Source of the DNA: Bugula neritina
Lineage: Eukaryota > Animalia > Bryozoa
Direction of reading: 5' to 3'
Assembly (NCBI GenBank): GCA_964035545.1
Contig: CAXIUT010000255.1
Coordinates: forward strand, 28,587 to 92,586
DNA: 64,000 bases
Shown here: positions 26,847 to 53,623 of the stretch, piece by piece
Layout of the letters: every line of letters begins with the position of its first letter
How positions within the stretch are numbered: position 1 is the first letter of the stretch
Program-made: the position numbers and the translations under genes
The notes under the pieces: model-generated
The model's database searches: none
Told to the model about the DNA's origin: nothing
Seen by the model: only the letters and a program-made list of their open reading frames with translations

Positions 26847-29492
26847 ATGAAAGGAATCAAAGTCCTACTTCTGATAGTAGTACTTCTTGGTTCTCTTAAC
26901 GCCTAGATGATCCAACTTGGATCTGATAGCATCTTTAGTAGCATCACGAAGGGATCAGATAACTCCATTTTCGGAAATGGAAATTCCATGGGAGGAAGTC
27001 CCAGTTCAGAAGCTGGAGGTTCTATCCTTGGAATGGGAAATTCCATTGGAGGAAATCCTAGTTTAGAAACTGGAGGATCTAATCTTGGAATGGGAAATTC
27101 CATGGGAGGAAATCCTAGTTTAGAAACTGGAGGATCTAATCTTGGAATGGGAAATTCCATGGGAGGAAATCCTAGTTTAGAAACTGGAGGATCTAATCTT
27201 GGAATTGTTGGCAATGGAAATATGCCAAAAGATAACTTAAATAGTATATTTGGAAATGGAAATAAAGATCCTGGTTCTGCCAACAATATTGATGGATCAA
27301 GTAATAGCCTCTTAGAAGATAGCAGTTCCATTGGTGGAAGTGGAAATATGCTCAGTGGAGATCTAAGTTCTATCTTTGGCAATGAAATTGCAGAAAATAA
27401 TTGTCCAAATCAACCATCACCACCACATCCTTAACCTTAACCTGAACCTCCACTACCACTACCACCACCTCCTTAACCTTAACCACCCCCTCCTTAGCCT
27501 TAACCTTACCCTTAACCTGAACCTTAACCACCACTACCACCACATCCTTAACCTGAACCACCACCACCACCACAACCACCACCTTAACCTTAACCTTAAC
27601 CACCACTACCACCACATCCTTAACCTGAACCACCGCCACCACCACCACCACCACCACCACCATCACCACCACCACCACCACCACCACCACCACCACCACC
27701 ACCACCACCACCACCACCACCACCACCACCACCACCACCACCACCACCACCACCACCACCACCACCACCACCACCACCACCACCACCACCACCACCACCA
27801 CCACCACCACCACCACCACCACCACCACCACCACCTTAACCTTAACCACCACTACCACCACATCCTTAACCTGAACCACCGCCACCACCACCACCACCGC
27901 CACCACCACCACCACCACCACCGCCACCACCACCACCACCACCACCACCACCACCACCACCACCACCACCACCACCACCACCACCACCACCACCACCACC
28001 ACCACCACCACCACCACCACTTCCTTAACCTGAACCACCACTACCACCACCACCACCACCACCACCACCACCACCACCACCACCACCACCACCACCACCA
28101 CCACCACCACCACCACCACCACCACCACCACCACCACCCCCTCCTTAACCTTAACCACCACTACCACCACTTCCACCACTTCCTTAACCTTAACCACCAC
28201 TACCACCACTTCCTTAACCATAACCTGAACCTGAGCCTTCTTTCCCATCAGAACAACCTCCTCTTTAACCTCAACCTCCATCTTAACCGTTTCCCTAACC
28301 ACCTTCACCACCAGGTAGAAGAGGGCCGCCAAGAAGAAAACCACCAGGTAGAAGAGGGCCGCCAAGAAGAAAACCACCAGGTAGAAGAGGGCCGCCAAGA
28401 AGAAAACCACCAGGTAGAAGAGGGCCGCCAAGAAGAAAACCACCAGGTAGAAGAGGGCCGCCAAGAAGAAAACCACCAGGTAGAAGAGGGCCGCCAAGAA
28501 GAAAACCACCAGGTAGAAGAAGGCCGCCAAGAAGAAAACCACCAGGTAGAAGAGGGCCAAGAAGAAAACCTTGTAGAGGAGGAAAATGTAGAAGAGGAGG
28601 AAAACCTAGAAGAGGAGGAAAATGTAGAAGAGGAGGAAAACCTAGAAGAGGAAGAAAACCTAGAAGAGGAAGAAAACCTAGAAGAGGAAGAAAACCTAGA
28701 AGAGGAAGAAAACCTAGAAGAGGAAGAAAACCTAGAAGAGGAAGAAAACCTAGAAGAGGAAGAAAACCTAGAAGAAGACATCCTTATAGAAATAGAAGAC
28801 AACCAAGGAGAAGAAGACATCCTTATAGAAATAGAAGACAACCAAGGAGAAGAAGACATCCTCAAAGGAATAGAAGACAACCAAGGAGAAGAAGACATCC
28901 TCAAAGGAATAGAAGACAACCAAGGAGAAGAAGACATCCTCAAAGGAATAGAAGACAACCAAGGAGAAGAAGACATCCTCAAAGGAATAGAAGACAACCA
29001 AGGAGAAGAAGACATCCTCAAAGGAATAGAAGACAACCAAGGAGAAGAAGACATCCTCAAAGGAATAGAAGACAACCAAGGAGAAGAAGACATCCTCAAA
29101 GGAATAGAAGACAACCAAGGAGAAGAAGACATCCTCAAAGGAATAGAAGACAACCAAGGAGAAGAAGACATCCTCAAAGGAATAGAAGACAACCAAGGAG
29201 AAGACATCCTCAAAGGAATAGAAGACAACCAAGGAGAAGAAGACATCCTCAAAGGAATAGAAGACAACCAAGGAGAAGAAGACATCCTCAAAGGAATAGA
29301 AGACAACCAAGGAGAAGAAGACAACCAAGGAGACATCGACCAGCTCCCAGAAGACACAGATCCTCTCCTAGAAGACACAGACCCTCTCCCAGAAGACATA
29401 GACCAACTTCTAGAAGAGGTGGAGGAAGAAGAGGAGGAAGAAGAGGAGGAGGAAGAAGAAGAGGAGGAGGAGGAAGAAGAAGACGTAGATGA
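26847..29492 (+). CDS. Secreted Gly/Asn-repeat, poly-Pro/PE, Arg-rich protein, paralog 1 (~881 aa, intronless)
   Basis: Signal peptide MKGIKVLLLIVVLLGSLNA; 19-aa GGNPSLETGGSNLGMGNSM repeats; polyPro with PEPEP; (PPGRRGPPRRK)n, (PRRGRK)n and (PQRNRRQPRRRRH)n; RRGGG tail. Open to TGA 29490-29492 with TAR=Glu. Confidence 0.85.
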
Positions 29493-31170
29493 TCTACTAT
29501 CTTTTACTTTTAATCATATATTTTGGAGTCAAATAATACTAGTTAATTATTATTGATTCTTAACTATGAATTTAAAGAATAAAAGTTGATAAGATAATAT
29601 TTATTATTAATAAATCTATATTATATTTGAAAAAAAATCTATTAATAAAAATTAAGTTTGAATAATCAAGTGGAACAACTAATAAACTGTCAAAAAATTA
29701 TTTTAGTTTTGATAAATAACTATTTTCAGTCATTAAGAGTCATTTTTTTAATCTTTTCTGACCAATAGCATCTATCAATATGGTGTCTTTGTTCTTTTTT
29801 ACTTACTTTTTTGCTTTAAATCTTCAATTATTCTCATTTGCAGATTGAATTCTATCGAATTATGTTTTGATCTATCTGATTTTGAGACATTTTCACTACT
29901 TTTTTTGATTCTAAATGATGTTTTTTGTTCTCTCTATCGATCTATTTTTATATCTAAAGATTAAATATCGCCTATTAAAAAAATAAACTACTTTATTCAT
30001 GTTTGAAATATAACTATTGATAGATGAAACTGTTGATAAGATATAACTATTGATAAGATATAGCTATTAATAAGATGAAACTATTGATAAGATGTAACTG
30101 TTGATAATGTATAACTATTAATGAGATGCAACTGTTGATAAGATATAGTTGTCCAAAAGATATATTTGTGATCGATTCTTTACTATAAATATCACAGAAG
30201 AAGCTATCAGTCTTCTAAACAAACGCTTTGTACCTTCTAGTATTGTTTGATAAATCATATTCTTTGGCAACTACCTAAGACAGTTACTATCTTTGTCTAA
30301 AATCCTTTTTCTTTATTTTAAATTTGAGATTGATTTTTTGTTTGAATTTTAATTCTTGGAATATTAAGTTAGTTAGCTGACTAAGTAGGCGGTGTCGACT
30401 GTGATAGTTAGCTCTCTTTTGTATCTCGCTTTGAAAGTATTGAGACCCCATTGATCTCCCAACCGACTAGCCAAGACTGATAACCTTGACTGCATGTTTT
30501 TTTTTATCTTTCAAAAGCTTCGAATCGATAAGCCAACTCTTTTCGATCTACAAGAAAGCTTTAATCTTGACTATTTGTTTTTATAAGTATCAACTCAATG
30601 TCATTGATGATCCTTTCGAAAAATAGTCTCTTAAAGACATCATCATAGACCAAGATTCTTGATTATCCATTTGTATTAGATAAAATAATTATTGATGGAT
30701 GGTTCTTCTAGAGCTAGAGTTACTTCAAACTAGAAGAAAGAACTTGGGATAACTTGAATCGACATCACTCATAATATTTTATGGAACAAATGAAAAAAAA
30801 AATAATTTCGACTTTAGAAAATATTAGAAAAAAAACATTTTATTTGATCAATATTAACTAATCCATCTTGTATCAGTCTTCATCAACAATATATATAAGA
30901 AGATAGTCAATGAAAAATCGTTTAATTTTACTTTTTCTTTTTTTCTTTTTAAAATCACTCAGTGAAAATAAACATCTTTAGAGCTAAATTTAAACTCCAA
31001 TTAGGGTCTAGTTCTATATTATGTTTGAAATATTTATTCCCGATGGTAAATTCTTTTTAGAAACTTAATAAATAAGGTTTTCAGAACATTATAACTGATA
31101 ATTAAAAGCAAGTGATTTTCTTCATAAATGGAAGATTTATTTAGAATTCTTTACATTTATATTCTTCTAA

Positions 31171-33414
31171 ATGAAAGGAATCAAAGTCCTACTTCTGATA
31201 GTAGTACTTCTTGGTTCTCTTAACGCCTAGATGATCCAACTTGGATCTGATAGCATCTTTAGTAGCATCACGAAGGGATCAGATAACTCCATTTTCGGAA
31301 ATGGAAATTCCATGGGAGGAAGTCCCAGTCCAGAAGCTGGAGGTTCTATCCTTGGAATGGGAAATTCCATTGGAGGAAATCCTAGTTTAGAAACTGGAGG
31401 ATCTAATCTTGGAATGGGAAATTCCATTGGAGGAAATCCTAGTTTAGAAACTGGAGGATCTAATCTTGGAATGGGAAATTCCATGGGAGGAAATCCTAGT
31501 TTAGAAACTGGAGGATCTAATCTTGGAATGGGAAATTCCATGGGAGGAAATCCTAGTTTAGAAACTGGAGGATCTAATCTTGGAATTGTTGGCAATGGAA
31601 ATATGCCAAAAGATAACTTAAATAGTATATTTGGAAATGGAAATAAAGATCCTGGTTCTGCCAACAATATTGATGGATCAAGTAATAGCCTCTTAGAAGA
31701 TAGCAGTTCCATTGGTGGAAGTGGAAATATGCTCAGTGGAGATCTAAGTTCTATCTTTGGCAATGAAATTGCAGAAAATAATTGTCCAAATCAACCATCA
31801 CCATCACCATCACCATCACCATCACCATCACCATCACCATCACCATCACCATCACCATCACCATCACCATCACCATCACCATCACCATCACCATCACCAT
31901 CACCATCACCATCACCATCACCATCACCATCACCATCACCATCACCATCACCATCACCATCACCATCACCATCACCATCACCATCACCACCACCATCACC
32001 ATCACCACCACCACCACCACCACCACCACCACCACCACCACCACCACCTTAACCTTAACCACCACTACCACCACTACCACCACTACCACCACATCCTTAA
32101 CCTGAACCACCACTACCACCACTTCCACCACTTCCTTAACCTTAACCTTAACCTTAACCACCACTACCACCACTACCACCACTTCCTTAACCTGAACCTG
32201 AACCTGAACCACCACTACCACCACTTCCACCACTTCCTTAACCTTAACCTGAACCTTAACCTGAACCACCACTACCACCACTACCACCACTTCCACCACT
32301 TCCTTAACCTTAACCTTAACCACCACTACCACCACTTCCTTAACCATAACCTGAACCTGAGCCTTCTTTCCCATCAGAACAACCTCCTCTTTAACTTTAA
32401 CCTCAACCTCCATCTTAACCGTTTCCCTAACCACCTTCACCAGGTAGAGGAGGAGGAGGAGGAGGAGGAGGAGGAGGAGGAAAACGTAGAGGAGGAGGAA
32501 AACGTAGAGGAGGAGGAAAAATGAGAAGAGGAGGAGGAAAACGTAGAGGAGGAGGAAAACGTAGAGGAGGAGGAAAAATGAGAAGAGGAGGAGGAAAACG
32601 TAGAGGAGGAGGAGGAAAAATGAGAAGAGGAGGAGGAGGAAAACGTAGAGGAGGAGGAAAACGTAGAGGAGGAGGAAAAAATGAGAAGAGGAGGAGGAAA
32701 ACGTAGAAGAGGAGGAAAAATGAGAAGAGGAGGAGGAAAACGTAGAGGAGGAGGAAAACGTAGAGGAGGAGGAAAAATGAGAAGAGGAGGAGGAAAACGT
32801 AGAGGAGGAGGAGGAAAAATGAGAAGAGGAGGAGGAAAACGTAGAAGAGGAAGAAAACCTAGAAGAAATAGAAGACAACCTAGAAGAAATAGAAGACAAC
32901 CTAGGAGAAGAAGACATCCTAAAAGAAATAGAAGACAACCAAGGAGAAGAAGACAACCAAGAAGAAGAAGACAACCAAGGAGAAGAAGAAAACCTAGAAG
33001 AAAAAGACAACCAAGAAGAAGAAGACAACCAAGGAGAAGAAGAAAACCTAGAAGAAAAAGACAACCAAGAAGAAGAAGACAACCAAGAAGAAGAAGACAA
33101 CCAAGGAGAAGAAGACAGCCTAGAAGAAAAAGACAACCAAGGAGAAGAAGACAACCAAGGAGAAGAAGACAGCCAAGAAGAAAAGACAACCAAGGAGAAG
33201 AAGACATCCTCAAAGGAATAGAAGACAACCAAGGAGAAGAAGACAACCAAGGAGACATCGACCAGCTCCCAGAAGACACAGATCCTCTCCTAGAAGACAC
33301 AGACCCTCTCCCAGAAGACATAGACCAACTTCTAGAAGAGGTGGAGGAAGAAGAGGAGGAAGAAGAGGAGGAGGAAGAAGAAGAGGAGGAGGAGGAAGAA
33401 GAAGACGTAGATGA
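31171..33414 (+). CDS. Secreted Pro/Arg block protein, paralog 2 (long (SP)n tract; RRGGGK repeats; paired indels near 32680 and 33182)
   Basis: Same signal peptide and N-domain as paralog 1; about 30 copies of (CCATCA) = (PS)n; same C-terminal RRGGG...RRR-TGA; start and stop are in the same frame. Confidence 0.8.
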
Positions 33415-34252
33415 TCTACTATCTTTTACTTTTAATCATATATTTTGGAGTCAAATAATACTAGTTAATTATTATTGATTCTTAACTATGAATTTAAAGA
33501 ATAAAAGTTGATAAGATAATATTTATTATTAATAAATCTATATTATATTTGAAAAAAAATCTATTAATAAAAATTAAGTTTGAATAATCAAGTGGAACAA
33601 CTAATAAACTGTCAAAAAATTATTTTAGTTTTGATAAATAACTATTTTCAGTCATTAAGAGTCATTTTTTTAATCTTTTCTGACCAATAGCATCTATCAA
33701 TATGGTGTCTTTGTTCTTTTTTACTTACTTTTTTGCTTTAAATCTTCAATTATTCTCATTTGCAGATTGAATTCTATCGAATTATGTTTTGATCTATCTG
33801 ATTTTGAGACATTTTCACTACTTTTTTTGATTCTAAATGATGTTTTTTGTTCTCTCTATCGATCTATTTTTATATCTAAAGATTAAATATCGCCTATTAA
33901 AAAAATAAACTACTTTATTCATGTGTTTTAATCAACTTTAGAAAACTTTTCAATATTTAATGATGTATTGATGATCATTTATCTTAAGAAAAATAATATT
34001 TTATTGATATAAAATCATAAGTTAGATTAAATTTCTTCTGACAAACAATTTGATTTATTTTTTTTATAAAAAAATCAAATATTTTTCTTTTTTCGACATC
34101 TGAAAAAGGCATTTAATGTAAATGCTAAAAGCATAAATATGAATTAAATTAAATTAAAAATAATCGAAATATTAGCAATTAGTAGTATAAAAGTAAATAG
34201 GAGAATAATATGTTTATTCAATGATATATTATTTGATTGATCGTATTGATAG

Positions 34253-35068
34253 ATGAATAATCAATTCTAGAAAGCAAGATTAACTATACAAGACTGCTCT
34301 TTCCCTAATTTTTATAAAGAATAACGAAATAAGCAAAAATAAAGTCACAAAAAAGGTATTATTAGTCTTCAGTCATAATCACTTCACAATAAACACAAAT
34401 AACACATTATGAAACATAAATAGAATAGTCGTTAGATAAATGAAATCAAACAGTAATAAAACAAGTTAAAATATCAAAAAGGGAAATCACTTAATGGCTA
34501 TTAGTTTGGTTTGTTGCAGAAATAAATATATTTTCCTAGTTTGCCTTCAAAGAAATAGACAAATAATAATAATTCATAAGAAGGAATAAGATCTTACAGT
34601 TCAACTAAGCTGATCCCAAGTCATCATCATAAGCAGAAAGGCAGAAAGGCAGAAAGCCATATATTTAGGATGCAATAAAACTTATAGAGAGTTTAAAAAA
34701 ACATGAAAAAGATCACAATAAACTAACTAAAGACAACATAATTTTAAAATAAAGAAATAAAAGTGGATCTTAAGTTGAAGAAATTGTCTTCTTTCAAATC
34801 AAAAATGACATCTAATGGTAAAAATCATTTGAACAGGTTGACAAATGGTGTTTTGATACCAGAATAGTTACATAGTTAGAGGTGTTAGTAAAAGTTATAT
34901 GATAATAATAATTTCAATTTACAGATGAAGAACACTGTGAGGTTTTAATTTGATAGCAACCTTCATGTTTAAAAAAACAAATAAAAGTAAATGGAAAAAA
35001 AAAAACAGTATAAAATTTAAGGATGGAAATAGGATAGGTATTTCGTGCCTATAGGATTTTATATGTGA
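34253..35068 (+). CDS. Hypothetical orphan protein (271 aa), copy 1
   Basis: Uninterrupted ATG..TGA frame with TAR=Glu; the second copy differs by an in-frame 3-nt indel. Confidence 0.55.
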
Positions 35069-35107
35069 TTTATCTTAGTTATTTTATTGATTTTATATTC
35101 ATTAATA

Positions 35108-36922
35108 TCATTCCACTTTGTTGGCTGTTGATTTATCGAGTTTGCTTAGCATTTAGACCTGTTTGGCTGGATGTTCAGGTGAATTGATTTTTTAATCTGT
35201 TTATGACTTGAATAATTGTTTAGATGTTTTTTTCTATATTATTTTAGGATGTTAATGTTTTTGTTCACTTTTTTTCATACTCTATAATCCTAAATCTTGT
35301 TATTTAAGCGTTGATCTTTAAGGACCTTTTATTTTACCTGGAATTTTATCTTTGTATTGTTCTTGATGGTTGAACTGAGAAAGATATGATCCATATTTAC
35401 TATCGTTGGCTAGAAATTGTAATCTTATATTTTTTTATATTTATCTTTATCTTTTTATTTTATCTCTTAACTATCTGGCAGTCTATAAATATAGATCGCT
35501 ACTATCAATATGATTTTTAATGGCTATTCCTCTCATATGTTGATACTATGTGCCTTTAGCTATTTATTAGTAATGTTTTTAGTAATACTTTAGACTTCTA
35601 TTTTCCATTTATCTTAAAGATATTTTATTAAGCTGATTATTAATAGAAGAATAGGGATAACTAAGATCGATTCCTATGATATTATTTTTAATATTGGTTG
35701 TATCTTATTGAATGCTGATTCTATGTTATAATCTTTTGAGTCGATCGCTTTATATTTATATTTATGCTGTTTTTCTCATAAATTACTGATATTATTACTA
35801 TACTTTCTTCTTAGCTTGCCATTCTTATCTTTATTTTGCTCTATTATTGGCTTATATCTATTTTTGTAATTGAATATTCCATTTTTACTGTTAGTAGTTT
35901 ATTTTAACCTTTTATAAACTTGCAGATTGCTAGATTAGTAAATTTTAATCTATCTATTTTTATTATTGCTAGATCTATTTTATTTTCTATCTTATCCTTT
36001 GATATTTCTACTACTTATTATATTTTTATTCATATTTATCAATTTTATTATTCTAATTGTTGATATTACTTTTATTATGATTATTACTTTTATTTCGATT
36101 ATTACTTTTACTGTTGATATTGTTTTTATTTGAGAGGTGTTTTTAAAATTCATATCCAAAAGTAATCTGTTTTGGTATTTTTCTTTTGTTGGTTTATTTT
36201 ATTTTATTTTGATATTCTCTATCTTTCCCTTATAATCCTTAAATAGTCCATTTCAATTGATATTAATTGACTTTACCGTCTATTTTGAAATTAAGCACTT
36301 CAACTAACTTCTATACCTGTCTCTGATTGACATCGTAACCGTAATTCTTCATAAATTTATATATATCTTCCCCGCAAATCCAACTATGTCTGTTTTCATC
36401 TATTGCCAGTACTACTCCATGAAGAGAATAATCCTAGTTCCTGAGTAATGTCCTTCTTATCTAGAGTATCTTCATTTATCTACGCATTATCTATAAAATC
36501 AACTATCTGAAGATGTCTAGTTGCTGTAGGATTGTTTGAGGTTGTGAACTTTACAACTCTGGTCTTTATACCCTTTGGGCTACTAACTAACGTAGTTAAA
36601 GGTCGTCTCTGGGTAAAAGAAAAGTAGCAAATTATAGTCTGCTGACTTATCCTGTCTTTAAATTATCAATCCAGCTGAAAGCATAGGTAAGTAGTTTTTT
36701 ATGCGAGGTGCCTATCACTTTTTGAATATCTTTTTCACGAATATATCCTTTTTACTATTTATCAAGGAATCGGAACAATGCTATTGAGTCGAAGTATGGT
36801 GTATCAGCTAGAGCTTATCTAAATGATTAAATAGATTAGTTGAGAAGTAGTAGTTATGCGAATATATTAGCTAGAAGGGTTCTTGATTTGATAGAAAGCA
36901 TGTTTTGTTGATAGTAGGCCAT
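35108..36922 (-). CDS. EF-hand domain protein, copy 1
   Basis: FDSIALFRFLDKEEKGYIREKDI, WIDNLKTGEVSRLEFATFLLP, IDENRHSWICGEDIYKFM; low-complexity C-terminus; end approximate. Confidence 0.65.
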
Positions 36923-36964
36923 GATAGAGTTGTTAACTTATTTTATACTTAAAATTATATTATT

Positions 36965-37075
36965 GATTATATATTATTTGAACAAATCTATTGATGATAT
37001 ACTATTTGAACAAATCTATTGATGATATACTATTTGAACAAATCTATTGATGATAATTATTCTGATAAATCTATC
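36965..37075 (+). repeat. 28-bp intergenic minisatellite (about 3.5 copies); counterpart at 45338-45445
   Basis: Unit ...AACAAATCTATTGATGATATACTATTTG here and ...AATAAATCTATTGATGATATATTATTCT in unit 4. Confidence 0.75.
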
Positions 37076-38722
37076 AAATGGGACCTTATTCTTATTTTTA
37101 TAGCTATTATTTTGTCATTTACTTCTTCGATTATTCATTCTTTATATCATTTTATACTATTTTTTATGTTTTATTCTATTCCTTTATCCTTTCTTTATCA
37201 ACAACCTTTATATTTGATTATTAGTATTTTTAGTTATTTTATAATGATAATTCTGATAGTTTGACTTTATTAGTTTATTTTTTGTATATATTCTTTTATA
37301 GTTATTTGAAGGCTTTTTCTAGTCTTTAGAAGAAAAGAAATATTTATTTATTTTTTGTTCCTACAGCACAAGCAAAGGTAATATAAGGCAAAGAGTCATA
37401 ATTGTTAGAATGTGTTCCATAGTTTTTAAAGCTATTATTCCCTATTTTAGTTATTTTTTATGAAGATGACAAGATACGATGACCCATCACTCTCTTACTA
37501 TACAAAATTGCACCTAATTGAGTAATATCTGCCTATTGTTTGTATTGTGATAAGTACATAGCTATAGATATTGTATTATTTGGTGTTTTTAGAATAGTGC
37601 AGTTGTGTTTTAATGCAAATTTTTATCCTTACTTTAGTAGTTATTTATAGTTATTCTTTCTTTATGTCTTTAGCTATTGGATTGTTGATTTTCCCATTGA
37701 TAAAAGAGTTATAAAAAGGTCTGTAATTGGACTGCCGCTTGCTCTTCCTGGATATTTTGATGAAACTATATGACTAAATTATTACTTTTATCTAATAGAG
37801 AAGATTATTTACAGAAGATGAAGGATCCCCCGACTGGGACCATGAAATTTTTATCTGTGCTTTGAACTACTACTGTGCATTACCCTTTAGACATTCCTTA
37901 CTTGATTAGATGGGCTATTTTAGAACACCAAATGCCGTAAGCATTATTGACTACATGAAATAATTAATATTTTTTTGCCAAAATAGATATCTAATCTACT
38001 CTATCAGGTATCCTAGGAGCAAAACAGCTAGTAGTTGACATAACAGCTAAAACATTTTATATACCGAGTTCTTTGATCTTCTTTTCAATAGCTTAGACAT
38101 CAGAGTAGAGATAGTCTCCTTATTTTTTGAGCTATATTACGATTGGAGTGAGATTTGCACTTATGATTGATTTTAGACATGTTTTTTGGTCGATTCTTGA
38201 CCAAATCACATACTTTTTATCTGGATTTAAAGAGTGTAAGGTTAGTAGTGCTAAAGTTAAAGACATTCCTGTTGCCAGAGGGAGTAAAAGAACATCTTCT
38301 ACAAATTAATATTTCAGTTGATGTAGAGCACTTACAGCTAAGTATCTAGTTAGTTGTAGTAAAAGACTGCTTCCTGCTGCTTTTGGCTGATTTGCCATTA
38401 CATCACCACTACGACCTATATATGATATTATTCTACCTATGCCGTGACCCATGTGAAAATGTCTCTCTGCGACTAATCTAGAGTATATTCTGGATTATCT
38501 CTAGCCAACGCCAACTTTATTGTCGAAGTTATTGCTGTCCATGAGGGCAAAAGAATCGAGGATATAGCGAATGGTGAGCTAGTCGAGAGGTTGGAGGGGA
38601 AGCTGTCGTTGCGAGAGGATTTATTTGAGTACTTTTTATCTTTTGTTAATGGAATTCTGAGCCAGACGTATATAAGAAGGAGTGATGATGTCTTCAGCAA
38701 GTTTGAAGTTTTTATCGTCCAT
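37074..38722 (-). CDS. SEPSECS: O-phosphoseryl-tRNA(Sec) selenium transferase, copy 1
   Basis: [93 protein letters not shown]; 21-nt intron at 38416-38436. Confidence 0.92.
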
Positions 38723-39621: not shown

Positions 39622-39818
39622 ATCTTTAAAGTCAAATTTAAGCTCCAATTAGGGTCTAGTTCTATATTATGTTTGAAATATTTATTCCCGATGGTAAATT
39701 CTTTTTAGAAACTTAATAAATAAGGTTTTCAGAACATTATAACTGATAATTAAAATCTAGTAATTTTCTTCATAAATGGAAGATTTATTTAGAATTCTTT
39801 ACATTTATATTCTTCTTA

Positions 39819-41612
39819 ATGAAAGGAATCAAAGTCCTACTTTTGATAGTAGTACTGCTTGGTTCTCTCAACGCATAGATGATCCAACTTGGATCTGATA
39901 GCATCTTTAGTAGCATCACGAAGGGATCAGATAACTCCATTTTCGAAAATGGAAATTCCATGGGAGGAAGTCCCAGTTCAGAAGCTGGAGGTTCTATCCT
40001 TGGAATTGGAAATTCTATGGGAAGAAATCCTAGTTTAGAAACTGGAGGATCTAATCTTGGAATGGGAAATTCCATTGGAGGAAATCCTAGTTTAGAAACT
40101 GGAGGATCTAATCTTGGAATGGGAAATTCTATGGGTGGAAGTCCCAGTTCAGAAGCTGGAGGTTCTAATCTTGGAATTGTTGACAATGGAAATATGCCAA
40201 AAGATAACTTAAATAGTATATTTGGAAATGGAAATAAAGATCCTGGTTCTGCCAACAATATTGATGGATCAAGTAATAGCTTCTTAGAAGATAGCAGTTC
40301 CATTGGTGGAAGTGGAAATATACTCAATGGTGATCTAAGTTCTATCTTTGGAAATCAAATTGCAGATAATAATTGTTCAAATCCACCATCACCACCACAT
40401 CCTTAACCTTAACCTGAACCACCACTGCCACCACCACATCCTTAACCTTAACCTGAACCACCACTGCCACCACCACATCCTTAACCTTAACCTGAACCAC
40501 CACTGCCACCACCACATCCTTAACCTTAACCTGAACCACCACTGCCACCACCACATCCTTAACCTTAACCTGAACCACCACTGCCACCACCACATCCTTA
40601 ACCTTAGCCTTAGCCTTAACCTTATCCTTAACCTTAACCTGAGCCACCACTACCACCACTTCCTTAACCTTAGCCTTAACCTTAACCTTAACCTGAGCCA
40701 CCACTACCACCACTTCCTTAACCTTAACCTGAACCTAATTTCCCACCAGAACAACCTCCCCCTCCTTAACCTCAACCTCCATCTTAACCATCTCCTCCAT
40801 CTTAACCACCACCACCTCCTCCTCCTTAACCACCTTCAGCACCAATTCCACCAAGAAAACCACCAGGTAGAAGATTTCCACCTGGAAAAAAACCTTGTAG
40901 AGGAGGAAAATGTAGAAGAGGAGGAAAATGTAGAAGAGGAGGAAGAAAACCTAGAAGAGGAGGAAGAAAACCTAGAAGAGGAGGAAAATGTAGAAGAGGA
41001 GGAAGAAAACCTAGAAGAGGAGGAAGAAAACCTAGAAGAGGAGGAAGAAAACCTAGAAGAGGAGGAAGAAAACCTAGAAGAGGAGGAAGAAAACCTAGAA
41101 GAGGAGGAAAATGTAGAAGAGGAGGAAGAAAACCTAGAAGAGGAGGAAGAAAACCTAGAAGAGGAGGTAGAAAACCTAGAAGAAATAGAAGACAACCAAG
41201 GAGAAAAAGACATCCTAAAAGAAATAGAAGACAACCAAGGAGAAGAAGACAACCAAAAAGAAATAGAAGACAACCAAAAAGAAAAAGACAGCCAAAAAGA
41301 AATAGAAGACAACCAAGGAGAAAAAGACATCCTAAAAGAAATAGAAGACAACCAAGGAGAAGAAGACAACCAAAAAGAAATAGAAGACAACCAAGGAGAA
41401 GAAGACAACCAAAAAGACATCGGCCAGCACCCAGAAGACATCGGCCAGCACCCAGAAGACATCGGCCAGCACCCAGAAGACATCGGCCAGCACCCAGAAG
41501 ACATCGGCCAGCACCCAGAAGACATCGGCCAGCTCCCAGAAGACACAGACCAACTTCTAGAAGAAGTGGAGGAAGAAGAGGAGGAGGAAGAAGATGTAGA
41601 AGACGTAGATGA
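39819..41612 (+). CDS. Secreted Pro/Arg block protein, paralog 3
   Basis: Same signal peptide and N-domain; (PEPEPEPPLPPPH)n, (PRRGGRK)n, (RRHRPAP)n and RRGGGRRCRRRR; TGA at 41610-41612 in frame. Confidence 0.85.
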
Positions 41613-42227: not shown

Positions 42228-42299
42228 GGGGTTGGGGGGTTGGGGTTGGGGTTGGGGTTGGGGTTGGGGTTGGGGTTGGGGTTGGGGGTTGGGGTTGGG
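42228..42299 (+). repeat. Internal telomeric tract (slightly irregular) flanked by a 43-bp direct duplication
   Basis: 72 bp tract; 42185-42227 equals 42300-42342. Confidence 0.9.
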
Positions 42300-43386: not shown

Positions 43387-43425
43387 TTTATCTTAGTTAT
43401 TTTATTTATTTTAAATCTATTAATA

Positions 43426-45291
43426 TCATTCCACTTTGTTGGCTGTTGATTTATCGAGTTTGCTTAGCATTTAGACCTGTTTGGCTGGATGTTCAGGTGA
43501 ATTTATTTTTTAATCTGTTTACTACTTGAATAATTGTTTAGATGTTTTTTTCTATATTATTTTAGGATGTTAATGTTTTATTTCACTTTTTTTCATACTC
43601 TATAATCCTAAATCTTGTTATTTAAGTGTTGATCTTTAAGGACCTTTTATTTTACCTAGAATTTTATCTTTGAATTGTTCTTGATGGTTGAACTGAGAAA
43701 GATATGATCCATATTTACTATCACTAGCTAGAAATTGTAATCTTATATTTTTTTATATTTATCTTTATCTTTTTATTTTATCTCTTAACTATCTGGCAGT
43801 CTATAAATATTGATCGCTACTATCAATATGATTTTTAATGGCTATTCCTCTCATATGTTGATACTATGTGCCTTTAGCTATTTATTAGTAATGTTTTTAA
43901 TAATATTTTAGATTTCTATTTTCCATTTATCTTAAAGATAATTTATTAAGATGATTATTAATCGAAGAATAGGGATAACTAAGATCGATGCCTATGATAT
44001 TATTTTTAATATTGGTTGTATCTTATTGAATGCTGATTCTATGTTATAATCTTTTGAGTCGATCGCTTTATATTTATATTTATGCTGTTTTTCTCATAAA
44101 TTACTGATATTATTACTATACTTTCTTCTTAGCTAGCCATTCTTATCTTTATTTTGCTCTATTATTGGTTTATATTTATTTTTGTAATTGAATATTCAAT
44201 TTTTACTGTTAGTAGTTTATTTTAACCTTTTATAAACTTACAGATTGCTGGATTAGTAAATTTTAATCTATCTATTTTTATTATTCCTAGATCTATTTTA
44301 TTTTCTATCTTATCCTTTGATATTTCTACTACTTATTCTATTTTTGTTCGTATTTATCAATTTTATTATGATTATTGATATTAATCTGATTGTTGATATT
44401 ACTTTTATTATGATTATTATTCTGATTGTTGATATTACTTTTATTATGATTATTATTCCAATTGTTGATATTATTCCAATTGTTGATATTATTCTTATTT
44501 GAGAGGTGTTTTTAAAATTCCTATCCAAAAGTAATCTGTTTTGGTATTTTTCTTTTGTTGGTTTATTTTATTTTATTTTGATATTCTCTATCTTTCCCTT
44601 ATAATCCTTAAATAGTCCATTTCAATTGATATTAATTGACTTTACCGTCTATTTTGAAATTAAGCACTTCAACTAACTTCTATACCTGTCTCTGATTGAC
44701 ATCGTAACCGTAATTTTTCATAAATTTATATATATCTTCCCCGCAAATCCAATTATGTCTGTTTTAATCTATTGCCAGTACTACTCCATGAAGAGAATAA
44801 TCCTAGTTCCTTAGTAATGTCCTTCTTATCTAGACTATCTTCATTTATCTACGCATTATCTATAAAATCAACTATCTGAAGATGTCTAGTTGCTGTAGGA
44901 TTGTTTGAGGTTGTGAACTTTACAACTCTGGTCTTTATACCCTTTGGGCTACTAACTAACGTAGTTAAAGGTCGTCTCTGGGTAAAAGAAAAGTAGCAAA
45001 TTATAGTCTGCTGACTTATCCTGTCTTTAGATTATCAATCCAGCTGAAAGCATAGGTAAGTAGTTTTTTATGCGAGGTGCCTATGACTTTTTGAATATCT
45101 TTTTCACAAATATATCCTTTTTACTATTTATCAAGGAATCGGAACAATGCTATTGAGTCGAAGTATGGAGTATCAGCTAGAGCTTATCTAAATGATTAAA
45201 TAGATTAGTTGAGAAGTAGTAGTTATGCGAATATATTAGCTAGAAGGGTTCTTGATTTGATAGAAAGCATGTTTTGTTGATAGTAGGCCAT
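43426..45291 (-). CDS. EF-hand domain protein, copy 2
   Basis: Paralog of 35108-36922 with an expanded internal low-complexity repeat near 44360-44500. Confidence 0.65.
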
Positions 45292-45443
45292 GATAGAGTT
45301 GTTAACTTATTTTATACTTAAAATTATATTATTGATTATATATTATTCTAATAAATCTATTGATGATATATTATTCTAATAAATCTATTGATGATATATT
45401 ATTCTAATAAATTTATTGATGATATATTATTCTAATAAATCTA

Positions 45444-47092
45444 TCAAATGGGACTTTATTCTTATTTTTATAACTACTATTTTGTCATTTACTTCTTCAA
45501 TTATTCATTCTTTATATCATTTTATCCAATTTTTTATGTCTAATTTTATTCCTTTATAATTTCTTTATCAACAACCTTTTTATTTGATTATTAGTATTTT
45601 TAGTTATTTTATAATGATAATTCTGATAGTTTGATTTTATTAGTTTATTTTTTGTATATATTTTTTTATAATTATTTGAAGGCATTTTCTAGTCTTTAGA
45701 AGAAAAGAAATATTTATTTATTTTTTGTTCCTACAGCACAAGCAAAGGTAATATAAGGCAAAGAGTCATAATTATTAGAATGTGTTCCATAGTTTTTAAA
45801 GCTATTATTCCCTATTTTAGTTATTTTTTATGAAGATGACAAGATACGATGACCCATCACTCTCTTACTATACAAAATTGAACCTAATTGAGTAATATCT
45901 GCCTAATGTTTGTATTGTGATAAGTACATAGCTATAGATATTGTATTATTTGGTGTTTTTAAAATAGTGCAGTTGTGTTTTAATGCAAATTTTTATCCTT
46001 ACTTTAATAGTTATTTATAGTTATTCTTTCTTTATGTTTTTAGCTATTGGATTGTAGATTTTCCCATTGATAAAAGAGTTATAAAAAGGTCTGTAATTGG
46101 ACTGCCGCTTGCTCTTCCTGGATATTTTGATGAAACTATATGACTAAATTATTACTTTTATCTAATAGAGAAGATTATTTACAGAAGATGAAGGATCCCC
46201 CGACTGGGACCATGAAATTTTTATCTGTGCTTTGAACTACTACTGTGCATTACCCTTTAGACATTCCTTACTTGATTAGATGGGCTATTTTAGAACACCA
46301 AATGCCGTAAGCATTATTGACTACATGAAATAATTAATATTTTTTTGCCAAAATAGATATCTAATCTACTCTATCAGGTATCCTAGGAGCAAAACAGCTA
46401 GTAGTTGACATAACAGCTAAAACATTTTATATACCGAGTTCTTTGATCTTCTTTTCAATAGCTTAGACATCAGAGTAGAGATAGTCTCCTTATTTTTTGA
46501 GCTATATTACGATTGGAGTGAGATTTGCACTTATGATTGATTTTAGACATGTTTTTTGGTCGATTCTTGACCAAATCACATACTTTTTATCTGGATTTAA
46601 AGAGTGTAAGGTTAGTAGTGCTAAAGTTAAAGACATTCCTGTTGCCAGAGGGAGTAAAAGAACATCTTCTACAAATTAATATTTCAGTTGATGTAGAGCA
46701 CTTACAGCTAAGTATCTAGTTAGTTGTAGTAAAAGACTGCTTCCTGCTGCTTTTGGCTGATTTGCCATTACATCACCACTACGACCTATATATGATATTA
46801 TTCTACCTATGCCGTGACCCATGTGAAAATGTCTCTCTGCGACTAATCTAGAGTATATTCTGGATTATCTCTAGCCAACGCCAACTTTATTGTCGAAGTT
46901 ATTGCTGTCCATGAGGGCAAAAGAATCGAGGATATAGCGAATGGTGAGCTAGTCGAGAGGTTGGAGGGGAAGCTGTCGTTGCGAGAGGATTTATTTGAGT
47001 ACTTTTTATCTTTTGTTAATGGAATTCTGAGCCAGACGTATATAAGAAGGAGTGATGATGTCTTCAGCAAGTTTGAAGTTTTTATCGTCCAT
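45444..47092 (-). CDS. SEPSECS: O-phosphoseryl-tRNA(Sec) selenium transferase, copy 2
   Basis: Near-identical to copy 1, offset by 8370 bp. Confidence 0.92.
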
Positions 47093-48197
47093 ATTTTATA
47101 CTAACTAGATGTAACTATTCATTAGATATAACTATTGATATGATATAACTATCAATAAGATGAAACTATTGATAAGATGTAACTATTGATCGATTCTTTA
47201 CTATAAATATCACAGAAGAAGCTATCAGTCTTCTAAACAAACGCTTTGTACCTTCTAGTATTGTTTGATAAAATCATATTCCTTTGGCAACTACCTAAGA
47301 CAGTTACTATCTTTGTCTAAAATCCTTTTTCTTTATTCTAAATTTGATTGATTTTTTGTTTGAATTTTAATTCTTGGAATATTAAGTTAGTTAGCTGACT
47401 AAGTAGACGGTGTCGACTGTGGTAGTATACTCTCTTTTTTATCTCACTTTGAAAGTATTGAGACCTCATTGATCTCCCAACCGACTAGCCAATACTGATA
47501 ACCTTGACTGCATGTTTTTTTTATCTTTCAAAAGCTTCGAATCGATAAGCCAACTCTTTTCGATCTACAAGAAAGCTTTAATCCTTGACTATTTGTTTTT
47601 ATAAGTATCAACTCAATGTCATTAATGATCCTTTCGAAAAATAGTCTCTTAAAGACAACCATCATAGACCAAGATTCTTGATTATCCATTTGTTTTAGAT
47701 AAAATAATTATTGATGGACGGTTCTTCTAGAGCTAGAGTTGCTTCAAACTAGAAGAAGAACTTGGGATAACTCGAATCGACATCACTCATTGTGTTTTAT
47801 GGAATAAAAAAAAAAAAAAATAACTTCGACTTTTGAAGATCTTCAAAAAAAAAAACATTTTATTTGATCAATATTGACTAATCCATCTCGTATTAGTTTT
47901 TATTAACAATATTTTTCAAAAGATATTCAATACAAAATTGCTTTAAACCACAATTTATTTGTTTCACCTTTTTTTGGATGAGTAAAAATAAACATAAAAA
48001 TAGCAAAGTAAATTAGTCATTAAAGTTTTAATTTGTTATTTTATTATCAATGTTCTTGCTCTCATTTGTAGTTTTTCTATAGAACACATAGAAAAATATT
48101 TTCTTTAGAACATTATAACTGATAATTAAAAGCAAGTGATTTTCTTAGATAAATAGAAGCTTTTTTTAGAATCCTTATATATATATATTCTTCTTCT

Positions 48198-49265
48198 ATG
48201 AAAAGAATCGAAGTCCTACTTCTGATAGTAGTACTGCTTGGTTCTCTCAATGCCTATATGATCTAGCCTGGATCTAATGACATATTTAGCAACTTCATGT
48301 AGGGATCTGATAACTCTATGAACAACAATATGCTTTTTGAAAATGAAGATTCAATGGTTGGATCAGATAATGGCTTCTTAGAAAATAGCAATTCTATGGA
48401 AGGAAATGGAAATATACCCAATGGAAATCTAAATTCTATCTTTGGTACTGATTAGTGTGAAACAATTCCTCATCCACAACAACCACCTTGCAGTTCTTGC
48501 CCATCAGGGGTTTGTCCAACTCCTGTCTGTTAAAATCCACCAACCCCACCACCACCACCACCACCACCACCACCACCACCACCACCACCACCACCACCGC
48601 CTTAACCTGAACCTTGTGAACCTTATTATCCACCAGAACCACCCTATCCTTAACCTCATGACCCTTATTGTCCACCAGAACCGCCATCTCCTCCACCTCC
48701 TTAGCCACCTTTACCACCAACAAGGCCACCACCTTTGCCACCAACAAGGCCACCACCTTTGCCACCAACAAGGCCACCAATAAGGTGTCCACCAAGAAGA
48801 TGTCCCCCTCCAAGAAGACCTCCAACAAAATGCCCTCCTCGAAGAAGACCCTCACCTCCAAGAAGAGGCGGAGGAAGAAGAGGCGGAGGTAGAAGAGGCG
48901 GAGGAAGAAGAGGCGGAGGAAGAAGAAGACCTCCAAAAAAATGCCCTCCTCGAAGAAGACCCTCACCACCAAGAAGAGGCGGAGGTAGAAGAGGTGGAGG
49001 AAGAAGAGGTGGAGGAAGAAGAGGTGGAGGAAGAAGAAGACCTCCAAAAAAATGCCCTCCTCGAAGAAGACCCTCACCACCAAGAAGAGGCGGAGGTAGA
49101 AGAGGTGGAGGAAGAAGAGGTGGAGGAAGAAGAGGTGGAGGAAGAAGAAGACCTCCAAAAAAATGCCCTCCTCGACGAAGACCTACAAGAAAAAGTCCTC
49201 CTCGAAGAAGACCCTCACCACCAAGAAGAGGCGGAGGAAGAAGAGGGTGTAGAAGACGTAAATGA
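48198..49265 (+). CDS. Secreted Pro/Arg block protein, paralog 4 (short N-domain, Cys-containing)
   Basis: MKRIEVLLLIVVLLGSLNA; CSSCPSGVCPTP; polyPro; (PPTRPPPL)n; (KKCPPRRRPSPPRRGGGRRGGG)n; ends RRGCRRRK-TGA. Confidence 0.85.
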
Positions 49266-49428: not shown

Positions 49429-49503
49429 GGGGTTGGGGTTGGGGTTGGGGTTGGGGTTGGGGTTGGGGTTGGGGTTGGGGTTGGGGTTGGGGTTGGGGTT
49501 GGG
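49429..49503 (+). repeat. Internal telomeric tract (GGGGTT)12GGG
   Basis: 75 bp perfect repeat downstream of paralog 4. Confidence 0.95.
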
Positions 49504-50670: not shown

Positions 50671-51271
50671 AAGTTTTATTAATGAAAAAGACAACTATAA
50701 ATGAGAGAAGAGATATGTTCCTGACTTTTTAATGATAATTATCATCAAATAATATAATTGTTACTTATTAATTTTGTAACTATTTTTGTTTGTTACCATT
50801 AAGATAAGATAAGATCGTATTATAATCATCATAGTTATTTAGGTTGGATTGAACATTATCGAGAATATTAGTTGTTCTGAGAAGTATAACTTTATCTTAT
50901 TGATGCAAAATCACACTTTTTATTATGAATAAACAATCAAAAGAACTGATTTCGCAAGTCGAATAGAACTAATGATCACTTCTGTTGTGATCTTGAACTT
51001 ATAATATAGTCAATAAATTGTTTTAATCAACTATTTTCCATCTTTTCTAAAAATCCATCAGTAAAAAGATTATAAGTTTTATCGAAATAAATATATGAAT
51101 CAAGGTTTAGTTTGTTATTAAGGATAAATTTTGTTATTCCCATTTGCAGTTTCGGTATAGAAGCCTTAAAAAATAATATTTGATGGAACATTATAATCTA
51201 TAATTAAAATCAAGTGATTTTAGATGATAAATGGAAGCTTTATTTAGAATATTTTACATTTATATTATTCT

Positions 51272-53623
51272 ATGAAAGGAATCAAAGTTCTACTTCTAAT
51301 AGTAGTACTGCTTGGTTCTCTCAATGCTGATATGATCTCTTCTGGAGCTGATGGCATGTTCAATAACATCATGAAGGGATCAGACAACTTCATGAAGGGC
51401 AACAAAAATCAGCTTTTCGGAAATGAAAATACCATGGTAGGAAATCACAATAAATTTGCAGGAGATGGTAACCTTGGAGTTGGAGATGTCAATACCGTTG
51501 TTGGAAACGGTAATATGTTCAAAGGTAACTACAATAATATCTTTGGGCATGGAAATAAAGGTAAAGGTTCAGCCAACAAGATAGCTGGATCAGGAAATAG
51601 CTTCTTAGGAAACTGTAATACTATTGGAGGAAATGGAAATCTACTCAATGGAAATATAAATTCTATCTTTGGAAATAAAAATGTTGTTAAAGGAGATGGA
51701 AACTTCCTTAAAGGAAATTCTAATCTACTTATAAGTGATAAGTTTGGAAATATTCCTTCAAAACCATAAAAACCAATTTGCAGCTCTTGTCCATCAGGCA
51801 ACTGTCCATCAGGAAACTGTCCATCAGGAAACTGTCCATCAGGAAAATGTCCATCAGGAAACTGTCCATCAGGAAACTGTCCATCAGGAAACTGTCCAAA
51901 TCCCCCACCAGAACCTAAACCTTATGAACCTATTTGTCTACCAGGCAACTGTCCATCAGGCAACTGTCCATCAGGCAACTGTCCAAATCCCCCACCAGAA
52001 CCTAAACCTCATGAGCCTACGTGTCCACCACCACCACCACCACCGCCACTGCCACCTTGTCCTGAACCAGAACCTGAACCTCATGAGCCTACTTGTCCAC
52101 CACCACCACCCCCACCACCACCACCACCACCACCACCACCACCACCACCACCACCACCACCACCACCACCACCACCACCACCACCACCACCACCACCACC
52201 ACCACCGCCACCGCCACCACCACCACCGCCACCTTGTCCTGAACCTGAACCAGAACCTGAACCTCATGAGCCTACTTGTCCACCACCACCACCACCACCA
52301 CCACCACCACCACCACCACCACCACCACCACCACCACCGCCACCACCACCACCGCCACCGCCACCGCCACCTTGTCCTGAACCTGAACCAGAACCTGAAC
52401 CTCATGAGCCTACTTGTCCACCACCACCACCACCACCACCACCACCACCACCACCACCACCACCACCACCACCTTGTCCTGAACCAGAACCTGAACCTCA
52501 TGACCCTTATTGTCCACCACCACCACCTTGTCCAGGACCTTAACCTGAACCTCATGAGCCTTATTGTCCTCCTTCCACACCTCCTCCACCACCGCCACCA
52601 CCACCGCCACCACCACCGCCACCGCCACCACCACCGCCACCACCTCCTCCTTCTTGTCCTGAACCTTAGCCTCAGCCATAACCAGAACCACCAAGAAAAT
52701 GTCCAAGGCCTCCAAAACCACCAAGAAAATGTCCAAGACCACCTATATTTCCACCTAGAAAATGCCCAAGATAACCAAGATGTCCCAGAATACCAAGAAA
52801 ACCCAGATGTCCTAGACGACCTAGAAAACCAAGATGTCCTAGACGACCTAGAAGACCAAGAAGACCTAGAAAACCCAGATGTCCTAGACGACCTAGAAGA
52901 CCAAGAAGACCAAGAAGACCTAGAAAACCCAGATGTCCTAGACGACCTAGGAGACCCAGAAAACCAAGAAGGCCAAGATGTCCTAGAAGACCTAGAAAAC
53001 CAAGATGTCCGAGAAGACCAAGGAGACCCAGAAAACCAAGAAGGCCAAGATGTCCTAGAAGACCTAGAAAACCAAGATGTCCGAGAAGACCAAGGAGACC
53101 CAGAAAACCAAGAAGGCCAAGATGTCCTCGAAGACCTAGAAAACCAAGATGCCCAAGAAGACCAAGGAGACCCAGAAAACCAAGAAGGCCAAGATGTCCT
53201 CGAAGACCTAGAAAACCAAGATGCCCAAGAAGACCAAGGAGACCCAGAAAACCAAGAAGGCCAAGATGTCCTAGAAGACCTAGAAAACCAAGATGTCCGA
53301 GAAGACCAAGGAGACCCAGAAAACCAAGAAGGCCAAGATGTCCTCGAAGACCTAGAAAACCAAGATGCCCAAGAAAACCAAGAAGATGTCTATTCAAAAA
53401 AAGAAGTCAGCCAAGGAGACGACCTCAGCCAAGACGACCTCAGCCAAGACGACCTCAGCAAAGGAGACCTCAGCACAGACGACCTCAGCACAGGAGACCT
53501 AAGTCCAGACGACCTTCGAACCATCAAAGAGGTGGAAGAAGAGGCGGAGGAAGAAGAGGCGGAGGAAGAAGAGGCGGAGGAAGAAGAGGCGGAGGAAGAA
53601 GAGGGTGTAGAAGACGTAGATGA
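51272..53623 (+). CDS. Secreted Pro/Arg block protein, paralog 5 (intact 7-residue GxxNxhx repeats, Cys-rich)
   Basis: Signal peptide; about 17 heptads (e.g. GNKNQLF GNENTMV GNHNKFA GDGNLGV GDVNTVV); (CPSGN)n; (PPCPEPEPEPHEPTC)n; (RCPRRPRKP)n; RRGGG tail; TGA at 53621-53623. Confidence 0.88.

Follow-up and report, generated by a model that had tools for sequence, protein, structure and literature searches.

Five genes with a three-block architecture

The window analysed here, a stretch of 64,000 nucleotides in all, comprises positions 28587-92586 of contig C264 (CAXIUT010000255.1, whole length 92,586 bp) of a 216-Mb assembly deposited under the name of the bryozoan Bugula neritina (GCA_964035545.1). 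It carries five genes, p1 to p5, which emerge when TAA and TAG (TAR) are translated as Glu and TGA is the only stop codon, and whose products share an architecture of three blocks, with a head, a Pro/Glu spacer and an Arg-rich tail placed behind a putative signal peptide. A preliminary description, prepared from the DNA letters alone, had proposed five open reading frames (ORFs) under this code, and we recovered them at exactly the same starts (26847, 31171, 39819, 48198 and 51272); the translations also bear out its account of a common signal-peptide-like start, a Gly/Asn-rich head, a spacer with polyproline and PEPEP, an Arg tail and a shared RRGGG...RRRR end. It was likewise correct that the standard-code track conceals these genes behind poly-His/poly-Glu frames: at p1, the ORF listing made with table 11 contains only a piece of the head (26907-27434) and an off-frame poly-His/poly-Glu ORF (27376-29556).

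All five genes lie on the plus strand. In p1 (26847..29492, 881 aa), a signal peptide judged by eye (26847-26903) is followed by a head of 166 aa and net charge -12 (26904-27401) that includes four 57-bp/19-aa repeats of the GGSNLGMGNSMGGNPSLET type, by a Pro/Glu spacer of 305 aa (27402-28316; 237 Pro, 35 Glu, longest Pro run 57) and by an Arg tail of 391 aa (28317-29489; 187 Arg, 19 Lys, net charge +206) with 14 copies of a 13-aa RRRRHPQRNRRQP-type unit, closed by TGA at 29490-29492. The second gene, p2 (31171..33414, 747 aa), has five of the 57-bp head repeats, an (SP)n region of about 35 units (31794-32091), a Pro/Glu spacer that extends to 32481 and a basic tail (32482-33411). In p3 (39819..41612, 597 aa), the signal peptide and head run to 40373 (head of 166 aa, net -12), the PEPEP-rich spacer has 160 aa (40374-40853; 94 Pro, 36 Glu) and the Arg tail 252 aa (40854-41609; 109 Arg, 27 Lys, 6 Cys, net +136). 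The shortest gene, p4 (48198..49265, 355 aa), has a short head to 48515 (87 aa, net -13) with a CSSCPSGVCPTPVC motif, a spacer of 93 aa (48516-48794; 59 Pro, 8 Glu) and a tail of 156 aa (48795-49262; 60 Arg, 9 Lys, net +69) made of three 111-bp units with RRGGG repeats. Finally, p5 (51272..53623, 783 aa) starts with a signal peptide (51272-51328), followed by a head of 184 aa and net charge +6 whose predicted beta-roll of GNxNxhx heptads reaches about 51766, by 15-bp CPSGN repeats (51788-51985), by a polyPro/PEPEP spacer punctuated by Cys that ends at 52756 (292 aa; 199 Pro, 28 Glu, 19 Cys, longest Pro run 46) and by a tail of 288 aa (52757-53620; 134 Arg, 21 Lys, 20 Cys, net +154) built of 72-bp units, which encode eight copies of a 24-aa CPRRPRKPR-type unit.

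The N-termini read MKGIKVLLLIVVLLGSLNA (MKRIEV... in p4) and continue into a head rich in Gly, Asn and Ser; the putative signal peptide, as seen by eye, has a charged n-region, 12-13 hydrophobic residues and Ala at position -1. The spacers contain 54-78% Pro, 8-36 Glu, encoded by GAA as well as by TAA/TAG, and 0-4 Tyr each. Of the polyproline/(SP)n region previously attributed to the whole family, polyproline with PEPEP is present in all five members in the window and (SP)n is confined to p2. The tails hold 60-187 Arg, with Arg and Lys together making up 40-50% of the residues, and acidic residues are absent from those of p1, p3 and p4, single in p5, and represented by 26 Glu in the frame-shifted tail of p2 (see below). 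Cysteines are regularly spaced in the tails of p3, p4 and p5, and in all five proteins RRGGG...RRRR(R/K) directly precedes the TGA. The negative charges (12-47) are a fifth or less of the positive ones (69-206), as in p1, where about -47 in head and spacer stand against +206 in the tail. This imbalance of about four- to five-fold does not agree with the earlier proposal of a diblock polyampholyte that sets by self-coacervation, since condensation would require an external polyanion.

A ciliate chromosome with a TGA-only code

The contig starts with (CCCCAA)n (positions 1-95) and ends with (GGGGTT)n (window 63921-64000), thus having C4A2/G4T2 telomeres on both sides, and therefore represents a complete, telomere-to-telomere macronuclear chromosome of a ciliate. 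The remainder of the assembly contains multi-megabase contigs with animal-type, intron-containing genes, together with many other small contigs that also open with C4A2 repeats. It follows that the ciliate lived on or in the sequenced animal, as epibiont or symbiont, or else entered the assembly as a contaminant. A 6-kb stretch of the locus recurs in contigs from three studies, under three organism labels, and one of these occurrences belongs to a strain that is about 3.5% divergent in the intergenic spacer.

Every long ORF of the chromosome is closed by TGA, and in its ordinary genes 4-11% of the codons are in-frame TAA or TAG. These TAR codons fall at Glu positions of conserved motifs, including the kinase catalytic loop (HRDIKP-E-N; HRDxKPEN), cyclophilin (GG-E-SIWGG and FED-E) and the second nucleotide-binding domain of ABCA (HSM-EE-AEAL). 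In a tblastn comparison with the ABCA and cyclophilin exons of the co-assembled animal, with TAR codons entered as X in the queries, they were aligned to Glu (20), Asp (16) and Gln (3), counts that indicate a trend and are not a statistic, because sites are recounted across paralogous exons. No tRNA genes were found on this contig that could bring suppressor-tRNA support, and TAR substitutions between duplicated blocks are too few to tell Glu from Gln. The sequence evidence nevertheless supports TAR as Glu and TGA as the sole stop, which is NCBI table 30, the peritrich code that had been assumed beforehand, and C4A2 telomeres are compatible with an oligohymenophorean. It is therefore legitimate to read PEPEP as acidic, and TAR was translated as Glu in all selection and composition tallies.

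A larger family with a common upstream region

When the assembly was searched in six frames with the N-terminus of p5, four further paralogs came to light beyond the window, on the same chromosome (u1 to u4, at contig positions 10775, 12863, 16121 and 17935), so that what had been described as a family of five genes has nine members, all on the plus strand. The four upstream paralogs have the same type of putative signal sequence and long, regular heads of GNxNxhx heptads (about 40 in u1, more than 70 in u2), followed by a short Pro-containing linker (PPLPRRPRC in u1) and a tail of 60-90 residues rich in Arg, Gly, Cys and Tyr, with RGG, GYR and CRGGRC motifs; u2 consists of the head only and stops directly after it, and u3 has no in-frame TAA or TAG. 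Over its first 135 residues p5 is 60-67% identical to u1, u3 and u4, and by sequence it is the member that links the two subfamilies.

The locus has grown by segmental duplication of a cassette formed by about 1.1 kb of upstream sequence and a gene. A recent duplicate of p1, p2 is 99.6% identical to it over 1.9 kb of upstream region and head; p3 is 92-95% identical to p1 and p2 in the same parts, and the upstream region of p4 is 86% identical. The cassette 5' of p1 and p2 (window 25509-26773 and 29834-31098) also holds overlapping ORFs of 200-205 aa on the minus strand and an ORF of 166 aa on the plus strand.

The final 95 bp or so before the ATG are conserved in p1 to p5, forming a module of the pattern CAAGTGATTT ... 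ATAAATGGAAG ... ATG. Alignment of the upstream regions places it, always on the plus strand, at 26752..26846 (p1), 31076..31170 (p2), 39724..39818 (p3), 48103..48197 (p4) and 51177..51271 (p5), and in p1, p2 and p5 the motif pattern identifies it as well. An upstream motif is common to all nine genes; the two blocks CAAGTGATTT and ATAAATGGAAG are retained, beyond p1 to p5, in u1, u2 and u3, and their joint pattern has five occurrences in the 216-Mb assembly, all of them 5' of a family member. In addition, a motif (A/G)ATGATCTAC is found at or just past the stop codon in eight of the nine genes. The module is likely a shared promoter or 5' untranslated region. That its motifs are family-specific and have been kept although the synonymous divergence (dS) of the heads is about 1 between the subfamilies, near saturation, together with the motif near the stop codon, suggests common regulation of the family members.

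The head as a beta-roll of known kind

Pfam identifies the head as PF21300 (LbR_Ice_bind, "grass antifreeze beta roll"), with scores of 34.3 bits for p5, 49.5 for u3 and 72.1 for u1, above the curated gathering cutoff of 30 bits; this is the sole domain found in Pfam scans of heads and tails, and the head pieces of p1, p2 and p3 gave no match at E <= 1. With the u1 head as query, phmmer against PDB sequences returned a single match, the ice-recrystallisation-inhibition (IRI) protein of Lolium perenne (3ULT, E-value 3e-9). The AlphaFold2 model of the p5 head, based on a 34-sequence alignment with the consensus GxxNxxx, has a predicted confidence (pLDDT) of 89.7 and one three-residue strand every seven residues. 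Foldseek against the PDB gave no match to this head at E <= 0.001; VIA-align placed 3ULT first (Z 14.9, 29% identity), followed by UspA1 (13.9), AtaA (12.1), BpaC (12.0), CbpF (11.7) and YadA (9.9), with BoaA and EibD also within this range (Z 9.9-13.9), the high rmsd of about 8 Å meaning that these matches express agreement in fold class and not close superposition.

The head is thus predicted to be a left-handed heptad (xxNxVxG) beta-roll of the PF21300/YadA-like kind, an assignment that is secure for p5 and for u1 to u4. The beta-solenoid head proposed earlier stands for p5, and for p1-p3 it holds only in the last third: in the p1 model the last 65 residues or so (about 95-160) form a beta-roll with pLDDT 70-79, while the first 90 or so, which include the 19-aa GGSNLGMGNSMGGNPSLET-type repeats, have pLDDT of about 33, and the same limit applies to p1-p3 as a group. 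The head is accordingly a widespread extracellular repeat module and no new fold; whatever the role of the other blocks, as anchor or as peptide source, the family shows the presence of the PF21300/YadA-like module in alveolates.

The grass proteins raise the question of whether the ciliate proteins bind ice or inhibit its recrystallisation. The Pfam and PDB sequence matches to the Lolium IRI protein, with 3ULT also the top structural match, speak for such an activity, but the same fold and repeat are present in many surface proteins that are not antifreezes. Moreover, ice-binding faces are typically arrays of Thr, Ser, Val or Ala, whereas the variable repeat positions of the ciliate heads, as read by eye, are mostly Lys, Asn, Asp and Phe, and a tail of +200 would be left unexplained. 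We therefore consider an ice-related function very improbable.

Relatives in sequence collections

Protein searches were run with stop-free pieces or with the stop-free paralog u3. A HMMER search with u3 against 1.84 billion representative sequences gave 534 matches, all at most 39% identical and restricted to the repeat head, and none of the best 150 of these contains a Pro-rich or Arg-rich block. The best matches combine PF21300 with ESPR and YadA_anchor, with a transglutaminase-like domain or with FecR, others come from the algae Closterium and Amorphochlora, and the proteins matched through this repeat module are extracellular or located at the surface. A protein homology search with the N-terminus of p5 (165 aa), which covers proteins of 90-290 aa, found nothing at E <= 1e-5; two scans of metagenomes, for which the queries were the p5 head and an alignment of p5, u1 and u3, returned no relative. 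Feature searches in the ESM Atlas, starting from u3 and from the p1 tail, yielded no match that could be used. Relatives of the spacer or tail were found neither in Pfam or the ESM Atlas nor among the best 150 HMMER matches, and the PDB sequence search, for which the query was the u1 head, brought none either.

Thus, a secreted protein in which a beta-roll head is fused to a polyPro/Glu spacer of 90-300 residues and a polyArg tail of 150-390 residues, as we read these sequences, was found in no searched database. The earlier remark that this combination is unrecognised holds for the whole protein; the head by itself is already described, as PF21300. The HMMER and homology searches did not return the query proteins themselves, so that the collections appear to be without the proteins of this ciliate and absence means little beyond "not yet sampled".

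Head and tail matches on the large contigs of the assembly (C1-C8) were considered as homologues and ruled out, being animal DNA composed of a 21-bp minisatellite or a purine-rich satellite, some of it with TGA stops. Within the animal genome, a minisatellite with a 21-bp unit that extends over more than 3 kb (G000:C5:12237339-12240503), open in all frames and adjoining thiolase-like exons, mimics the heptad head when six frames are searched; it is no homologue.

Selection on the heads and behaviour of the repeats

The ratio of non-synonymous to synonymous substitution (dN/dS) of the heads is 0.42-0.43 when p1 and p2 are compared with p3, 0.23-0.30 for p5 compared with the upstream paralogs and 0.22-0.40 within the upstream group, with dS up to about 1.1. 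The overall range of 0.22-0.45 indicates that the heads are under purifying selection. As for the remaining blocks, a TGA-only code leaves CCA-rich and AGA-rich DNA open in several frames on both strands, so that an open frame alone proves nothing. The tandem-repeat periods inside the genes, as determined with TRF, are all multiples of three, from 3 to 222 (57, 36, 3, 33, 18, 39, 21 and 15 in p1), and the intergenic arrays have periods of 17, 28 and 51 in addition to the 6-bp telomere-like unit. In p1, p3, p4 and p5, the frame set by the ATG is the Arg-rich frame across the whole tail (470-1170 nt), despite wholly different repeat units. Between p4 and p5, the RRGGG repeats differ by four synonymous and no non-synonymous substitutions in the ATG frame; the repeats of the p1 and p3 tails misalign, which makes a per-frame dN/dS uninformative there.

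The exception is p2, where a segment at about 32678..33185 (plus strand) has its Arg-rich, p1-like reading in frame +1, and the annotated frame gives KRRK-T-E or KKTT-type sequence. This segment reads as rich in Lys, Thr and Glu because the DNA homologous to the p1 tail lies in another frame; Arg counts per frame along the tail show that the frame is regained near 33185, ahead of the common C-terminus, after some 500 nt. From the sequence, the change is either an assembly error in the A-runs or a true compensated frameshift.

These data bear on an explanation that would deprive spacer and tail of a function, according to which only the head and a short basic, Cys-rich C-terminus matter, and the polyPro and polyArg of p1-p5 are largely neutral micro- and minisatellite expansions tolerated by the TGA-only code, with p1-p3 drifting. 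In its favour, the upstream paralogs do without long spacers and tails, the arrays are very young (units 93-99% identical) and wholly different between paralogs in the type and number of units, and the frame change in p2, if taken as a compensated frameshift, has been tolerated. The heads of p1-p3 also depart in part from the canonical form, are modelled with low confidence and have a higher dN/dS (0.42, and 0.7 against p5), and in the related strain the p4 head differs at 7 of 311 nt, spread evenly over the three codon positions (2/3/2). Against it, the periods inside the genes are without exception multiples of three, four of the five genes maintain the Arg frame (for as much as 1.2 kb), all five retain the end RRGGG...C/G-RRRR-stop, and the dN/dS of the heads is still below 1. 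On balance, we hold this explanation to be unlikely.

A possible role as extracellular anchors

The locus comprises real genes of a ciliate with a peritrich-type code, and we tentatively favour the view that their products, modular and presumably secreted, are jointly regulated proteins of the extracellular matrix or of adhesion that carry a polycationic anchor. The head would be the binding module, since it is the sole part common to all nine members, u2 is head-only, and the relatives are adhesin heads and surface proteins. The polyPro region could act as a stiff, extended spacer of variable length in the polyproline II (PPII) conformation. A PPII helix rises by about 3.1 Å per residue, at which spacers of 240-300 residues would span roughly 70-90 nm. 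The polycationic tail might anchor the protein electrostatically to polyanions, or condense anionic polymers; candidate partners would be acidic polysaccharide in the matrix of a stalk, scopula, lorica or cyst, or else the surface of a substrate, a host or bacteria. Cysteines, and in the upstream paralogs also tyrosines, could provide covalent cross-links, the tail being fixed by disulfides.

A narrower version would make the p-type proteins a so far undescribed kind of protein cement or anchor, in which an adhesin-like beta-roll head is carried by a rigid polyPro rod of tunable length and a polyArg block of +70 to +200 with spaced Cys undergoes complex coacervation with anionic polysaccharide and sets through disulfides, so fixing the stalk or holdfast of a sessile or epibiotic peritrich to surfaces or hosts. 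This specific use strikes us as distinctly unlikely in the form given.

Several observations weigh against a matrix or adhesion role. The signal peptide was judged by eye only, and furin/kexin-like dibasic sites are present throughout the tail, which might therefore be cleaved on its way out of the cell. The heads of p1-p3 look partly degenerate in view of their low model confidence. Under a TGA-only code, purine-rich and CCA-rich repeats have more than one open frame, making the openness of the tails weakly informative, and the p2 tail tolerates a frame change. The four sequencing runs in which the locus was found consist of contigs with unspecified library type. In one of them p4 and p5 are covered and the spacer at 49.6-51.0 kb is skipped, which could hint at RNA; it also extends 400 nt beyond the p5 stop, so that no conclusion on expression follows.

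The main rival of the anchor is that the proteins are precursors of cationic, Pro/Arg-rich peptides with an antibacterial or prey-handling role, whose tail units are cut at the dibasic sites and whose acidic Pro/Glu region serves as a neutralising pro-piece. Known peptides of this composition include Bac5/Bac7, PR-39 and the apidaecins, the latter encoded as multi-peptide precursors, and acidic X-Pro/X-Ala pro-pieces (EAEP, APEP) occur in promelittin, cecropins and apidaecin. In the tails, short units rich in PR, RP and RRP are indeed repeated in tandem almost perfectly (98% matches), and peptides of this sort could serve a filter feeder that lives on bacteria. Against this, the negative charge amounts to only about one fifth of the positive, Pro runs of up to 57 are unlike any known pro-piece, the regular Cys of the p3-p5 tails are untypical of Pro/Arg antimicrobial peptides, and Pfam reveals no cathelin or other known pro-domain. 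Furthermore, the upstream paralogs have tiny or no tails and yet conserved heads, which argues that the head, and not the tail, is the conserved functional unit. A precursor function appears to us rather improbable.

Hardly anything is known at the protein level of the peritrich secretions that build stalks, holdfasts, loricae and cyst walls; our literature search on peritrich stalk and cyst-wall proteins found nothing relevant with such features, and no peritrich-specific secreted protein family characterised in the literature searched. The locus offers a compact candidate set, probably co-regulated, whose head domain is known and expressible. It also illustrates how TGA as the sole stop lets extreme coding repeats grow, and even shift frame, without truncation, as in the 57 consecutive Pro and the 187 Arg among 391 residues of p1. 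Should the proteins be polycationic anchors or cements, they would represent a new design for underwater adhesion; should they be peptide precursors, they would be the first host-defence-like Pro/Arg-rich peptides from a ciliate.

Other features of the chromosome

Interstitial (GGGGTT)10-12 arrays are found in the window at 14366-14431, 17536-17595, 39547-39621, 41771-41840, 42236-42299 and 49429-49503, and further arrays of this type and size lie 60-70 bp 3' of u1 and u4 (contig positions about 12040 and 18970). All have the G-strand on the plus strand, as in the right telomere, and the array 5' of p3 has taken the place of some 74 bp of the shared cassette and is itself about 75 bp of repeat, so that no length was added. 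Other small contigs of the assembly likewise combine a C4A2 end with several internal arrays, which are possibly alternative sites of fragmentation and telomere addition, or a mobile microsatellite. The array at 17536-17595 lies in frame within a PPWD1-like gene (WD40 and cyclophilin domains; 16709-18466, minus strand), where it encodes about ten Pro-Gln units between the two domains. It is an insertion that the protein tolerates, or else an intron that was not recognised as such.

A segmental duplication of 5.6 kb (window 33985-39542 and 42300-47915; 96.5-97.7% identical) carries a 600-aa ORF, a 270-aa ORF and, on the minus strand, a probable O-phosphoseryl-tRNA(Sec) selenium transferase (SepSecS-like, named by eye; 37487-38752 and 45857-47122). 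Two copies of a selenocysteine-pathway gene may be of note where TGA is the sole stop.

Comparison with known systems

The conserved, hydrophobic, signal-like sequence that opens all nine paralogs does not match the class of protamines and other basic nuclear proteins. Among secreted proteins, plant and volvocine hydroxyproline-rich glycoproteins (HRGPs; extensins, GP1 and pherophorins) also have a signal peptide, (SP)n (here in p2), polyPro rods next to globular domains and fast-evolving repeats. This likeness is compositional only. The ciliate proteins have no pherophorin or extensin domain in Pfam, very few Tyr and rods punctuated by Glu, and we know of no plant or algal HRGP with a polyarginine block.

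The Pro/Arg antimicrobial peptides and their precursors (Bac5/Bac7, PR-39 and apidaecin, and the pro-pieces of melittin and cecropin) share with the family cationic PR/RP repeats, an acidic Pro/Glu segment upstream and tandem identical units; the ciliate proteins differ in the absence of cathelin, in tails that are ten times longer (156-391 aa) and contain Cys, and in their unbalanced charges. Among protist wall proteins, Giardia cyst wall protein 2 is secreted and has a solenoid leucine-rich repeat (LRR) domain, a Cys-containing region and a basic, Arg-rich tail of about 120 aa. The order of solenoid, Cys region and basic Arg tail is thus alike, but in Giardia the solenoid is of the LRR type, the tail is shorter and polyPro is absent, and no sequence relationship was found.

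As regards the head, the grass IRI proteins (PF21300; 3ULT) have the same xxNxVxG heptad, are the closest match of p5, u1 and u3 by profile and of the examined heads by PDB sequence and structure, and are secreted, as the ciliate proteins putatively are. They are small beta-rolls, some with an LRR domain, without polyPro spacer or polycationic tail, and their exposed repeat positions differ from the charged or aromatic ones of the ciliate heads.

In overall plan, the family can be set beside the trimeric autotransporters (UspA1, AtaA, BpaC, CbpF, EibD and YadA). The Pfam scans of heads and tails found no YadA_anchor, ESPR, stalk or neck domain, and the ciliate proteins, from a eukaryotic host and with export by a putative signal peptide, have a polyPro "stalk" and a polyArg C-terminus in place of the coiled-coil stalk, neck and beta-barrel anchor. 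The repeat itself is shared with distant sequence matches that carry ESPR and YadA_anchor, the structural matches to autotransporter heads reach Z 10-14, and in both groups a left-handed beta-roll head would be held outside the cell on an extended stalk.

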